Shown here: piece by piece, positions 1 to 59,666 of the stretch
How positions within the stretch are numbered: the first letter of the stretch is position 1
Layout of the letters: each line of letters opens with the position of its first letter
Origin: Basidiobolus meristosporus CBS 931.73
Lineage: Eukaryota > Fungi > Basidiobolomycota
Direction of reading: 5' to 3'
Assembly: GCA_002104905.1 (NCBI GenBank)
Contig: MCFE01000013.1
Span: 124,001-188,000 of the forward strand
DNA length: 64,000 bases
Position numbers and translations under genes: made by a program
Notes under the pieces: generated by a model
The model's database searches: none
Seen by the model: only the letters and a program-made list of their open reading frames with translations
What the model was told of the DNA's origin: nothing

Positions 1-917
1 GTGAAGACCATCCTCAGTTCCGCGGTATCTATGTTGGATCCCTCTCCAGCCCCAGAGTCAAGGAGGAGGTTGAGGGCGCTGACCTCATCCTCAGTGTTGG
101 TGGCTTGAAGTCCGACTTCAACACCGGATCCTTCTCCTACCGCATGGACGCTGAGAAGACTGTCGAGATCCACTCTGACTACACTGATGTGTTCTACGGT
201 ACCTACAAGGCTGTTGGTATGAAGTACTTGTTGCCTAAGCTTGCTGCTGCCATTCCCAAGCGCGAGGTCCAAAGCATCAACCTCCACGTCGAGCTCCCCA
301 AGATCGACATGAAGGCCATGGTTCCTCAAGCCTGGTTCTGGAACAGAATGGGCAAGTTCTTCAAGCCTAACGACATTGTCCTTGCTGAGACCGGTACCTC
401 CGTGTTCGGCTGCTTGAACTCTCACATGCCCGAGGGTGCCACCTTCATCTCCCAGATTCTCTGGGGTTCCATTGGTTACACCGTTGGTGGATGTCTTGGA
501 GCTGCTGTTGCCGGACAAGAGCGTCGTGTTATCTTGTTTGTCGGTGATGGTTCCTTCCAGCTCACCTGCCAAGAAGTGTCGGTCATGATCCGTCTTGGTC
601 TCCGCCCCATCATCTTCTTGTTGAACAACAACGGCTACACCATTGAGCGTTTGATCCACGGAGTCAAGCGTACCTACAATGACATTGACAACTGGGACTT
701 CAGCAAGACCCTTGACTACTTCGGTGGTGCTGCTGGTCAAGACAAGATTGGATTCCAAGGCCGTGCCAACACTGCTGGTGAGTTTGAGCAAGTGTTGAAG
801 AAGGTCGAGAGCCACGCCGACAAGATCAACTTTGTTGAGGTCATGATGGACTGGTTGGATGCCCCTGAGAACTTGGTCAAGCAAGCTGAAGCTTCTGCCG
901 CTCTTAACCGCTCTTAG
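1..917 (+). CDS. PDC: Pyruvate decarboxylase PDC-1, 3' part only (5' end lies upstream of the window)
   Basis: Reading frame open from base 3 ([13 protein letters not shown]...) to TAG at 917. TPP-binding motif GDGSFQ...NN and YTIERLIHG present. The ORF-track start at 105 is an internal TTG, not the real start. Confidence 0.95.
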   Translation, partial: EDHPQFRGIYVGSLSSPRVKEEVEGADLILSVGGLKSDFNTGSFSYRMDAEKTVEIHSDYTDVFYGTYKAVGMKYLLPKLAAAIPKREVQSINLHVELPKIDMKAMVPQAWFWNRMGKFFKPNDIVLAETGTSVFGCLNSHMPEGATFISQILWGSIGYTVGGCLGAAVAGQERRVILFVGDGSFQLTCQEVSVMIRLGLRPIIFLLNNNGYTIERLIHGVKRTYNDIDNWDFSKTLDYFGGAAGQDKIGFQGRANTAGEFEQVLKKVESHADKINFVEVMMDWLDAPENLVKQAEASAALNRS

Positions 918-1824
918 ATTCATATAAATTTCCCAAATTAGATTGTACATTAAGTGATTAATAAAACTATGTTAACACAAACTTATTATATTGAGTACAA
1001 GATGTTTGAGAGCCATAATGACCAGGCCTATTCTATCCAAGCAAAAATTTGTTGTTTACACTATCGTGGTCAATCTTGTCAAGAAGCAGTGGCCCATTTG
1101 AGCAGAGAATCGTTTTGTAATTGACAATTTGATTTGTGACTATAATCAATTGGATCTTTTAGAGCATTATTTTTGACGTAAGTGATTTAAACCTTACCCC
1201 AAGTAGTTGGTGTATTTGAAATTACAATATTTCTCATAAACATTCTCCGTAGCCACTGATCGATTGTTTCGTGTGTTTGAAACAGATTAATCGTATTATT
1301 AATTTCTTCAGCCAGTCGCTATTAATTATTATGTATGTCTATTTTTCACCTTTTGAAGGGTTTTGATTCTCCCAACTTGGTATTATCCTTGCTCAATTTT
1401 CTTAATGAAGTTATCAATTCGACAATTTCAATGTTGGCATCATGTCGGTTTCCCAATGGGCTAATAACAGCTGGACCAATGATCTTTGTTAAGGTATTCT
1501 AGAACAATTGCAATTGCAGTTTATCACACTACTGTCTACTAATAAAGCTCTATCATCGTCGATGAATAAAAGCAATTGGATTCATTCATTTTACGTGGTT
1601 GTGAGAATGCTAGTGAAAATCGGACCAGATAGTATCCATAAGGAAATCCCACTTGCGCATGTAGCATACTCTACATAATTGGTAGTCTTTCTGTATTAGG
1701 ACGCTTGCTTTGGTAGCAATCAGTTCTAGTGTATACGATATTATCGGGATGCTATGGTATATATAAAGCGATCGAAATGCTACAAACATCATCAAACTAC
1801 TATTAGTTTTGTCCCACTACTAAG

Positions 1825-57180: not shown

Positions 57181-59020
57181 CTTGAAAAGATTGTTGCAGA
57201 GCCAAGTACGGGTGTAGTGTGTATATATACTTCATTTAAGGTTAGACCTAGTTTCCACGCTTAATCATTCTAGCCATTGATACAACCAAACACCCAGTTC
57301 TTGGAGCGAGGTCGGGCTATATGACGCTGACTGTAGTATACGTATTCGCGGTGCCCAACCGATATATTCGACCAAAACGACAGCTTGTTTACCAGGGGAT
57401 TTGTGTTTTTCCAAAATAGTATCATGGTTGACAAGTTCTTACCACAATGGTTTGACCTCATGTAGGAATGAGTTTAGCGAAGCAATCTTTCGGTGTCGCC
57501 TTGGTAAACCTTGAGCCGTATGGAACTGGATTCCAAATTCCATCTTATCTTACCAATCGCCCCGTCTATCAGTCTATCGGTTTTATCCGACCTTGAATGG
57601 GACTTTTTGGAGGATCCCTTTGGCCCTAATTCCCATAACCTACGTGCTGCCACTTTCAATTATTGTTAGTGTTAGGGTAGGTGGGGTACAGAACCGAACT
57701 TTCTGTTTAGGAAATATTTACTTACCCTTGATTTTCAATAGGATCCTTCCCGCTGTCGCGATCAGATTCGACCAATGAATACTATATTCGGCATTGCCAA
57801 ACGTAGTGCCTAGGTGAGAATTCTAGAGTTGACGATTCACCCACCCTTCGGTGGTTACGTGTTGGTAATGAAATCTAGGTCCCCTTACTCACATGGGTGG
57901 GTAAATCTTTGCCGGCTATAGATAGATTTCCACAGCTTCCCCATCTCCGTGGTTTCCCAGATTCTTACCTGCTTAAATCCCCGCATGCAACTATGTTTAG
58001 GAGAGATTAAATATGGTAAATCTGGTTTAAAAAACGTAGAATGATGGCTCCTGAAGTGGTGGGTTGCTTCATGCGATGTTCATTGATATCCCCTCATGTA
58101 TGGATATGTTGTTCATTCGAAGAAGTATTTCACCAGTGTGCACGCAGCAATGTTGGCTTTGGAAAATCTTCTGATTTGGGCCATGCTTGTCTTTTCAAAA
58201 TAGCTACCATTCTTTTACTTTTTTAATCCCGGGGATATTGATTATGCTTGCGATGGGCCTACTGCGTTTGAGAGTGGCTAGACATATGGGGCAGATGGGA
58301 GGATGCATTGCTTAACTATTACGTGCCTTGTATATATCAAACATTCGGAGATTAAAATGCTCCCGAAATATGGAAGTTTTTGATGTTGTCTCCCTGTCTC
58401 GGGCTAGATGACCACACGTGGTGTTTGAACCCGTGGCTTCGGTGTATTGGATTTGGCTATGCTAAGGTCTTGACTGCTCGCCTCAGCATTGGGTTCTGGA
58501 CATAGGCAGGGTAGCGAGAACACGGGTTCGTGGTGACCTTGTTTGGGGACGTCGATCTAAATTTGAGGAGGGTAGTTTCGCTCCCCGTGGCAATGGTGGA
58601 TGGTTCCTCGACCAACGTCGAGAAATACGATTGAAAATGGATAGGCTCGCAATTGTTGCTCCTTTACTTTTATCTTTTTCATATGACGTGTCGATGTTAG
58701 GAATCTCCCTGAGGATTTTCGGTCTGGATATGGAATCATGCAAGCAACCTCGTTTCTCAACCGTAGATGGACGTAACATCCTCATGACCTGGCATGCTAT
58801 AGATCGTGTTTGGACTGAGGCCATCAACTGTACATCTCGTTAATGCTTTTGATAAAATCTGGCGTACAGTACATCCACTCTGCTAAATATGTTGTTGTTC
58901 ACTATGTTTAGTCACTCCCTTTCCGAATTTATCACAAGCTAGATGATCGATTTAGCAAAAATATTATTCAAGGATGATTTCTATTTATTCTTGAGGGGTA
59001 ATTTACAGACTTGATCTAAT

Positions 59021-59666
59021 TTAATGGTTGTGCATGTCAAGGCTGATACGTCCGGCAATCTTGCCAGCCTGCATGTCCTCGTAAATTTGTGCAGTTTGAT
59101 CCATTCCCATGACCCTGTAGTGGTAATTGACCTTGCCACGAGCAGCAAAGTCAAGAGCCTCAGCAAGATCTTGATGGTTACCAACAATGGAACCACGGGT
59201 GGTCAACTGTTGGAGGACAAGATCGGACACGGGGAAGGTATCCTTGGCTCCAGCTGGAAGGGTAATGCAGGCAACAGTACCCCAGCGATGAGTGTAGTCA
59301 ACAGCTTGTTGGAAGGGCTTCATTTGGGCAACATGAGAGCCACGAGCCACACAGTACTCTTGGAAACTGCCATCAACACTGTATCCAGACAACTCTGACA
59401 GAGTCGCCATTCTTGAGGTGCTTGACATTGCTACCGAGAGCAGCAATCTTACCTGATCCTTCGCGACTACCGACCAAAGTGAGCACGATGGGGATAGGCC
59501 AGTCACCCTCGGCGGCGTGGAGGTCAGTGTGGCAGATACCGGTGTACTCGATCTTGACGAGGACGTCATCAGGTCCGGGAGTAGGGACAGGGATAGTTTG
59601 GATCTCAACGGGTTTCTCGTGAGATTCGATGACAGCGGCTTTTTGAGTCTTGGGGATTTGGGACAT
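59021..59666 (-). pseudogene. ADH-17 pseudogene
   Basis: GHEGAG has become SREGSG. One deletion removes the structural-Zn lobe and a second removes most of the NAD-binding domain; frameshifted. Confidence 0.9.

Follow-up and report, generated by a model that had tools for sequence, protein, structure and literature searches.

We analysed a 64,000-nt stretch of the genome of the fungus Basidiobolus meristosporus CBS 931.73 (assembly GCA_002104905.1, contig MCFE01000013.1, 260,741 bp, positions 124001-188000), hereafter called the window, which carries a long array of genes for pyruvate decarboxylase (PDC) and alcohol dehydrogenase (ADH). Together, PDC and an NADH-dependent ADH convert pyruvate via acetaldehyde to ethanol, and thereby regenerate the NAD+ of glycolysis without oxygen. 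Between positions 1 and 59.7 kb almost all long open reading frames (ORFs), as judged from a six-frame ORF list and Pfam, belong to these two families: the PDC frames, on the + strand, carry the TPP_enzyme_M and TPP_enzyme_C domains in their exon 2 ORF, and the ADH frames, on the - strand, carry the ADH_N and ADH_zinc_N domains.

The loci of both families were mapped by tblastn, using one PDC copy and one ADH copy as queries. The window contains ten PDC loci, all on the + strand (eight intact, one with a one-base frameshift and one cut by the window edge), and 17 loci for ADHs of the yeast ADH1 type, all on the - strand (14 intact, three broken). These counts agree exactly with those of a preliminary description of this DNA. 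The strict strand polarity claimed there holds within the window but not for the whole array. The array extends about 9.3 kb upstream of the window, where PDC lies on the - strand and ADH on the + strand; that is, the two families occupy opposite strands along the whole array, but their absolute polarity flips upstream of the window. The full array covers about 69 kb and comprises about 31 loci, namely about 12 for PDC (9 intact) and about 19 for ADH (16 intact). Among the 120 PDC hits listed in a protein search, this contig contributes one cluster of ten sequences at 90% identity and a divergent copy; no B. meristosporus PDC from another contig is among those 120, and the proteins encoded in the window stand there unnamed.

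Read towards the window, the upstream part consists of genes for ribosomal protein uL2 and alpha-SNAP, an ADH relic, two ADH genes on the + strand, a PDC gene on the - strand, a rearranged PDC on the + strand, and then the PDC cut by the window edge. The features are listed below, in window coordinates unless stated otherwise.

Upstream, L007:4342-5394 (about 115.1 kb in record MCFE01000013.1), + strand: outermost, distant ADH, 61% identical in amino acids to the rest
Upstream of the window, + strand: second ADH, 86% identical in amino acids
Upstream of the window, - strand: intact PDC, 97.7% identical
Upstream of the window, + strand: rearranged PDC
1-917, + strand: 3' part of the edge-cut PDC (tblastn match 3-917), 99.7% identical in amino acids to the reference copy; its 5' 350 nt have several frame changes in the record
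1825-3580, + strand: intact PDC of 558 amino acids with all catalytic motifs; exon 1 1825-2040, intron 2041-2119 (GTAAGT...TAG), exon 2 2120-3580
3902-4082, - strand: ADH relic inside a PDC-PDC spacer (tblastn)
5066-6821, + strand: intact PDC
8326-10082, + strand: PDC frameshifted by one extra C near 9190 but about 98% identical elsewhere; possibly a true pseudogene, possibly an error of the consensus
10995-12751, + strand: intact PDC with an 80-nt intron at 11211-11290
13269-14321, - strand: intact ADH of 350 amino acids
14875-14988, + strand: remnant of the 3' end of a PDC, flanked by an ADH gene on either side, 76% identical over the last 38 amino acids
15427-16479, - strand: intact ADH, the reference copy
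16480-17178: divergent ADH/PDC spacer of about 700 nt, with homologues at 24018-24723, 31378-32083 and 35600-36301
17179-18934, + strand: intact PDC
20937-21989, - strand: intact ADH
22908-26546: younger segmental duplicate of an ADH and a PDC, 97.6% identical to its partner at 30270-33908, spacer included
22964-24017, - strand: ADH with a single extra T near 23646 (frameshift)
24724-26479, + strand: intact PDC
28366-29418, - strand: intact ADH
30009-30074: relic of a PDC 3' end, paralogue of the relic at 14875-14988
30325-31377, - strand: intact ADH
32084-33839, + strand: intact PDC
34547-35599, - strand: intact ADH
36302-38057, + strand: intact PDC
38513-39565, 40816-41868, 43138-44190 and 45501-46553, - strand: run of four intact ADHs, whose spacers are 61-81% identical
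47172-48224, - strand: intact but more divergent ADH (93% identical in amino acids), in the same relative position as Basidiobolus ranarum L005:1-975
49389-51125, + strand: divergent, intact PDC of 559 amino acids with its intron at 49605-49661; orthologue of B. ranarum K7432_013261
51327-52394, - strand: intact mosaic ADH of 355 amino acids (tblastn match from 51354)
53003-53593, - strand: truncated ADH lacking about amino acids 31-167
54116-55168 and 56128-57180, - strand: two intact ADHs
59021-59666, - strand: degenerate ADH pseudogene at the right end of the array, 65-83% identical in amino acids in three pieces
60012-60890, + strand: flanking ORF of 292 amino acids with a 3'-5' exonuclease domain (DNA_pol_A_exo1), outside the array

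An array of this kind might arise as an artefact, if a few real copies had been inflated by the long-read assembler or by the stacking of haplotypes. The full array is present in one assembly only (GCA_002104905.1), and two copies carry single-base frameshifts that are possible consensus errors. However, no two intact copies in the window are identical at the nucleotide level: identity is 94.6-98.7% among the 12 close ADH copies and 97.2-98.8% among the PDC copies with their intron. The differences between copies are overwhelmingly synonymous substitutions by the method of Nei and Gojobori, not random insertions and deletions, which is the pattern of evolving paralogues rather than of sequencing noise. 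When the window is compared with itself, similarity begins within a few bases of the ATG and stops at the stop codon, and most spacers find no match elsewhere in the window, even with 9-nt words; the spacers are either unique or 61-81% identical. In a DNA run from the same organism (X1), contigs match two of the spacers with 0 mismatches at a depth of about 100-250, and gene-body contigs reach a summed depth of 1200-4300, about 6-20 times that of the spacers; this depth is a sum over paralogous contigs and not a copy number, but the ratio lies in the expected direction. The fragmented assembly of B. ranarum likewise holds several distinct PDC and ADH pieces. Since all copies differ, since the spacers are unique or deeply diverged, and since run X1 reproduces spacers exactly, we conclude that the array is not an assembly expansion, an explanation that we regard as close to refuted. 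Nor are the copies recent identical repeats: the gene bodies are 95-99% alike, and what lies between them is largely unalignable.

No aldehyde dehydrogenase, acetyl-CoA synthetase, regulator or transporter gene was detected in the array by the ORF list and Pfam. The only long ORF in a spacer, at 42211-42684 on the + strand (157 amino acids, between two ADH genes), has no Pfam match, and the window contains no tRNA genes. This ORF is probably non-coding, because part of its spacer is shared with the next spacer (80.8% identity). At the left border, the outermost ADH may be an older paralogue with a different role, either the seed of the array or a gene captured by it. The first gene outside the array on the right is the exonuclease-domain ORF at 60012-60890, whose codon bias is weak; beyond it, at 62805-63737 on the - strand, an ORF of 310 amino acids carries a reverse transcriptase domain of the Ty1/copia type (RVT_2, E 6e-41), a retroelement fragment at the array border.

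Homogenised genes and diverged spacers

The homologous spacers of about 700 nt that separate four divergently transcribed ADH/PDC pairs are 62-68% identical, against 95-98% for the gene bodies next to them. Only the younger pair 22908-26546 / 30270-33908 departs from this, with spacers that are 98.6% identical. A single intron interrupts every PDC gene and measures 79-80 nt in the main copies (558 amino acids) and 57 nt in the divergent one; the average distance between PDC introns is 0.075, about the same as the synonymous divergence (dS) of PDC, 0.082, and the flanks of the genes are unalignable.

Three explanations for this pattern were considered and rejected. Selection on synonymous sites cannot alone have caused the similarity, since the intron is as conserved as the synonymous sites and the homologous spacers are not. 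Retroposition is not the copying mechanism, since the intron is kept in every copy. A recent amplification of whole units, like that of yeast CUP1, fits only the 22908-26546 / 30270-33908 pair, which is alike across its spacer; most spacers have no similarity to one another.

Signs of recombination between the copies are abundant. In about 50% of the pairs of informative sites the four-gamete test fails, and the Hudson-Kaplan minimum number of recombination events (Rm) is 35 in the 1053 nt of ADH and 21 in the 1677 nt of PDC. In a GENECONV-like permutation test, unusually long identical runs occur in 40 of the 66 ADH pairs, and several of these are globally significant and lie between non-adjacent copies. 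The maximum-likelihood tree of ADH leaves 11 of its 19 inner branches open, as is expected under recombination, and it cannot be used to date the duplications.

A single gene, the ADH at 51327-52394, provides the clearest example. Its termini, an N-terminus of the form MYSxPQxQ and a C-terminal extension containing SGKRKE, are those of its positional counterpart in B. ranarum. Its nucleotides 361-900, on the other hand, are 94-100% identical to the main B. meristosporus family and 82-88% identical to the B. ranarum counterpart. Because the core resembles the main family and the termini resemble the counterpart, this segment must have been overwritten after the two species split, and we read it as a direct gene-conversion tract. 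The more divergent ADH at 47172 resembles the mosaic gene in a patchy way, at 73-86% identity over nt 541-720 and 94-100% in most of the adjoining 90-nt windows of the core. Taken together, the comparisons indicate that gene conversion has kept the gene bodies alike, whereas spacers and promoters have drifted apart, and the evidence for this is stronger for ADH than for PDC, the conserved PDC intron apart.

The array is also old. A 6.6-kb contig of B. ranarum (L005) carries ADH (-), PDC (+), ADH (-) and ADH (-), in the same order as window positions 47172-53593. The PDC on this contig aligns without gaps at 93% identity to the divergent B. meristosporus copy and is 90% identical to the main type; the divergent and main types of B. 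meristosporus are themselves 89% identical. Since the B. ranarum PDC is nearer to the divergent copy and the gene order is the same, the two PDC types and this block predate the species split. A second B. ranarum contig (L006) carries a divergent PDC/ADH pair, and several contigs of 1.3-1.5 kb carry partial ADHs, as would be expected because short reads shatter such a locus. In run X4, from a further relative whose sequences are 90-95% alike, contigs join the 3' end of PDC to the 3' end of ADH and the 5' end of ADH to the 5' end of PDC, and collapsed pieces have about 7-fold higher depth. By these comparisons the array is old and shared, at least in part, with B. ranarum. No intergenic high-scoring segment pair was found between B. 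meristosporus and B. ranarum, a result that is uninformative about the age of the spacers.

Outside these fungi the picture differs. We examined one PDC gene in each of Calcarisporiella, Umbelopsis, Mucor, Spizellomyces and Bifiguratus, and found no ADH within 10 kb in any of the five. The comparison with other fungi that the preliminary description had proposed thus places adjacent PDC and ADH genes in B. ranarum and in the source of run X4, and solitary PDC genes in five other early-diverging fungi. Two further observations concern the distribution of similar sequences. Run X6 (2025, a fourth organism) yields seven short contigs over 11380-14318 that are 90-95% alike to PDC and ADH, at low depth and some with Illumina adaptor at their ends; the probable source is a further Basidiobolus-like fungus, sequenced from a mixed or low-input sample. 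PDCs of the fungal type, 48-49% identical, also occur in bdelloid rotifers (Adineta, Rotaria, Didymodactylos) and rank among the Mucoromycota hits; this resembles the horizontal acquisition of genes already known from these animals.

Catalytic motifs, codon usage and transcription

Purifying selection on the intact copies is strong. Among the 12 close ADHs dS is 0.149 (0.059-0.222), and the ratio of non-synonymous to synonymous divergence (dN/dS) is 0.047; the corresponding values for the seven close and intact PDCs are 0.082 and 0.021 (Nei-Gojobori in both cases).

The PDCs have the three-domain architecture TPP_enzyme_N/M/C, in which the N domain is taken from annotated gene models and exon 1 encodes the N-terminal 72 amino acids. 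The motifs PGDFN, NELNA, HHTLG and GYTIE, along with the GDGS...NN motif that binds thiamine diphosphate and Mg (ThDP-Mg), are kept in all eight intact PDCs of the window and align with the PDC of Kluyveromyces lactis; we take them to correspond to the yeast catalytic residues Asp28, Glu51, His114/His115 and Glu477. The Cys of an ADAC motif is likewise kept in all eight, at the position of the pyruvate-activation residue Cys221 of yeast. The nearest structures are the PDCs of K. lactis and S. cerevisiae, at 416-404 bits, and the branched-chain, indolepyruvate and phenylpyruvate decarboxylases KdcA, IPDC and PPDC score 299-133 bits; a chain named 'branched-chain-2-oxoacid decarboxylase' (9axw) scores nearly as high as the yeast PDCs.

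All 14 intact ADHs of the window keep the ligands of the catalytic zinc (Cys, His, Cys) and of the structural zinc (four Cys), in the motifs GVCHTD, GHEG, CAGVT and C..C..C.......C. They also keep the GAGGGLG fold and the Asp of VAVD.G, an acidic residue of the NAD(H) type after beta-B, and the motifs GDWP and VVWL, which place Trp at the positions of Trp54 and Trp92. We assume that, as in yeast ADH1, these two Trp narrow the pocket to small substrates and that the acidic residue selects NAD(H). Their closest structural matches, at 385-374 bits, are Komagataella ADH3 and S. cerevisiae ADH1; 5yat and ADH1 align over the whole length, and the copies have no N-terminal extension. From these features we predict that the ADHs are cytosolic, NAD-dependent enzymes of the yeast ADH1 type. 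Pyruvate is the proposed substrate of the PDCs, and the flux would run towards ethanol.

Codon usage in the main copies is strongly biased: their effective number of codons (ENC) is 35-38, and third positions are mostly C or T. The bias is weak in the divergent PDC (ENC 52.7), in the outermost ADH (55.5) and, next to the array, in the exonuclease ORF (53.6). In most copies a TATA box precedes the ATG by 45-67 nt, and an AATAAA follows the stop codon at a distance of 40-70 nt. No strong motif was found to be shared upstream of the genes, only the TATA box and a weak enrichment of CCAAATT. This heptamer or its complement AATTTGG, often in the form TTCCAAATTG, occurs at most 400 nt upstream of 12 of 24 genes and downstream of 2 of 25; in a 500-nt scan most sites lie 190-380 nt before the ATG and four lie at about -490 to -500. 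The heptamer may be a cis element common to these genes, although the count is partly due to homologous flanks.

Evidence of transcription comes from run X3 (2013), which belongs to the same study as the genome run and which we mapped on 11000-17000. Its 1437 contigs cover the PDC and ADH gene bodies only, and all spacer bins have zero depth. In one contig 11210 is followed directly by 11291; the 80 nt left out, bounded by GT..AG, are the intron of the PDC at 10995, and the shorter side of the join measures 21 nt. Another contig, of 471 nt and with depth 1647, has 29-43 mismatches to that PDC copy and a side of 151 nt; its ten junction letters are the last four bases of exon 1 and the first six bases of exon 2 of the divergent PDC at 49389-51125, which must therefore be transcribed and spliced. 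Summed depth over the main-type genes reaches 1.35e5 for PDC and 1.8e5 for ADH. Positions at which paralogues differ, such as 11365 and 13686, show both alleles, and therefore more than one copy of each family is expressed. Run X3 thus behaves as cDNA, and the transcripts of the array are spliced and very abundant. Both families are abundant in this single cDNA-like run, and four of the units share the divergent spacer of about 700 nt.

Origin and role of the array

We consider it likely that this is a genuine and ancient array of two enzymes at a single locus, which serves the dosage of the ethanol fermentation route and whose gene bodies are kept alike by conversion and selection. Its founder unit would have been a divergently transcribed ADH/PDC pair, which we propose as the reason why the two families always face opposite ways. 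Growth would probably have proceeded by direct duplication through unequal crossing-over between paralogous gene bodies, a process that would keep orientations, yield runs of PDC only or ADH only, and leave relics such as those at 3902-4082 and 14875-14988. Selection for a high enzyme dose would keep the copies intact, and continued conversion among highly expressed, codon-optimised gene bodies would keep them uniform, with peripheral or diverged copies (49389, 47172 and the upstream ADHs) partly escaping. Each copy has its own TATA promoter and its own 3' end, both of them diverged. Because the copies are codon-biased and very abundantly transcribed, the array would multiply the dose of the route from pyruvate via acetaldehyde to ethanol. 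Its likely role is ethanol fermentation for hypoxic growth, the link to hypoxia being suggested by the predicted enzymes and the habitat: Basidiobolus lives in the guts of amphibians and reptiles, a setting described as anaerobic (PMC7466969). The earlier proposal of a co-amplification of the fermentation route for dosage is thus borne out as regards the array itself, its motifs, selection and transcription, but not as a simple recent event, since the array is old, shares a block with B. ranarum and has undergone conversion.

Several points weigh against this reading. Conversion tracts are weakly supported for PDC, with one globally significant fragment by permutation. A test of neighbour incompatibility like the pairwise homoplasy index (PHI) is not significant for either ADH or PDC, although it is without power here, incompatibility being already about 50% at all distances. 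No run labelled as RNA was among those listed, and the evidence for expression comes from the single run X3, which is tagged 'DNA?' by a guess at its kind and carries another organism label than the genome run; its contig depths, being summed over paralogues, gauge expression only roughly. PDCs of the yeast type act on 2-oxo acids other than pyruvate as well, and sequence does not reveal in which direction an ADH works. The ratio of ADH to PDC loci, 19:12, would not be expected from pathway dosage alone. Finally, the two one-base frameshifts may be consensus errors, so that the counts of intact genes are approximate.

The breadth of the PDC substrates raises an alternative of the Ehrlich type, in which the PDCs would act mainly on branched-chain or aromatic 2-oxo acids from the breakdown of amino acids in the gut, and the ADHs would reduce the resulting fusel aldehydes. 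Yeast PDC isozymes do take such substrates, Basidiobolus lives on protein-rich substrates, and the score of 9axw almost equals those of the yeast PDCs. Yet the best matches remain PDCs of the yeast type, well above KdcA, IPDC and PPDC; the Cys at the position of Cys221 is present in all eight PDCs, Trp is kept at both pocket positions of the ADHs, and the very high codon bias and transcript abundance fit a role in central carbon metabolism. We therefore think this alternative improbable. The surplus of ADH loci, for its part, might suggest that ethanol or acetaldehyde is consumed or detoxified, the ADHs oxidising bacterial ethanol or clearing acetaldehyde and the PDCs being incidental; runs of ADH alone, at 38513-46553 and 54116-57180, would fit this as well. 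But PDC is co-amplified and co-oriented in conserved divergent pairs and is equally abundant in the cDNA-like run, the array contains no gene for aldehyde dehydrogenase or acetyl-CoA synthetase, and the PDC reaction is irreversible towards acetaldehyde, all of which makes consumption very improbable as the role of the array.

A different kind of alternative is regulatory diversification, whereby the same enzymes are placed behind a different promoter in each copy, for different cell types or conditions (hyphae, gut stage, spores, oxygen). The promoter regions are indeed unalignable or 62-68% identical next to homogenised gene bodies, no strong upstream motif is shared, and the divergent copies stand apart in codon bias and in their depth in the cDNA-like run (1647 versus 1e4-1e5). 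Against this, both alleles at distinguishing sites show that several copies are on at once in a single cDNA-like run. Diversification is also compatible with dosage, and the two could coexist; as the explanation of the array we consider it possible but rather unlikely.

How the dosage array relates to known systems is best seen by comparison. Fungal fermentative lifestyles are mostly understood from yeasts, where extra copies of PDC and ADH are tied to fermentation, and where duplicated paralogues are a dispersed handful. The PDC1/5/6 and ADH1-5 genes of the Crabtree-positive S. cerevisiae belong to the same families and serve the same two-step route, and the array proteins are about 50-60% identical to their products with all catalytic motifs; but the yeast genes are dispersed, and those of Basidiobolus, about 31 loci, are interleaved at one. 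The CUP1, ENA and HXT arrays of yeast are, similarly, direct repeats at one locus that raise dose, with unequal crossing-over as their likely motor. Those arrays, however, repeat whole units with their flanks, and are young and variable in copy number, whereas the Basidiobolus array amplifies two unrelated genes together, has deeply diverged spacers and is common in part to another species. Ribosomal DNA (rDNA), histone genes and duplicated, highly expressed yeast genes with conversion confined to the coding region show the same homogenised bodies, sharp borders, mosaic tracts and escape at the periphery; the Basidiobolus array differs in being formed by a metabolic enzyme pair that makes up a complete pathway, with at least 20 functional members that each have their own promoter. 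The GAL and DAL clusters and the alc cluster of Aspergillus nidulans also link non-homologous genes of one pathway, and are conserved between species, but they contain a single copy of each gene plus regulators or transporters rather than many copies of two enzyme types. Among the Mucoromycota, Rhizopus (pdcA/pdcB) and Mucor (adh1) are likewise early-diverging, filamentous ethanol fermenters, and Mucoromycota PDCs are among the next-best matches listed, at 45-52% identity; unlike those of the array, the Mucoromycota PDC genes that we checked are solitary, with no ADH within 10 kb.

Full-text searches found, in the papers covered, no description of the Basidiobolus array or of a comparable PDC/ADH array, in keeping with the earlier statement that none was known; the gene models are public. 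Tandem dosage arrays, metabolic clusters and conversion limited to coding sequence each have precedents; their combination does not, namely a complete two-enzyme core pathway of about 31 loci that is interleaved, ancient and evolving in concert. More tentatively, and with less than even confidence, we suggest that the array is a pathway-level counterpart of rDNA and histone arrays, in which a two-step route is held as at least 25 functional genes whose coding sequences are kept uniform by conversion while their promoters are free to diverge. If this is true, the fungus would combine very high capacity with fine-grained control.

The array has several practical consequences. It offers a natural system for the study of concerted evolution in protein-coding genes, with clear tract boundaries and an outgroup, and a source of strong native promoters and of enzymes apparently expressed at a very high level. 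It also carries a warning: in Basidiobolus genomes assembled from short reads the locus will be collapsed or broken into pieces, as it is in that of B. ranarum. For this genus, 19 new genomes have been announced (bioRxiv 10.1101/2025.03.31.646025). For the biology of the organism, it indicates a different genomic route to fermentation, in which an early-diverging filamentous gut fungus has massively co-amplified both enzymes and maintained them for a long time. Basidiobolus is an occasional human pathogen, and the array suggests how it may survive passage through oxygen-poor guts and tissues. If the pathway-level interpretation holds, Basidiobolus would be a fermentative specialist of the anoxic vertebrate gut that evolved independently and by way of amplification.

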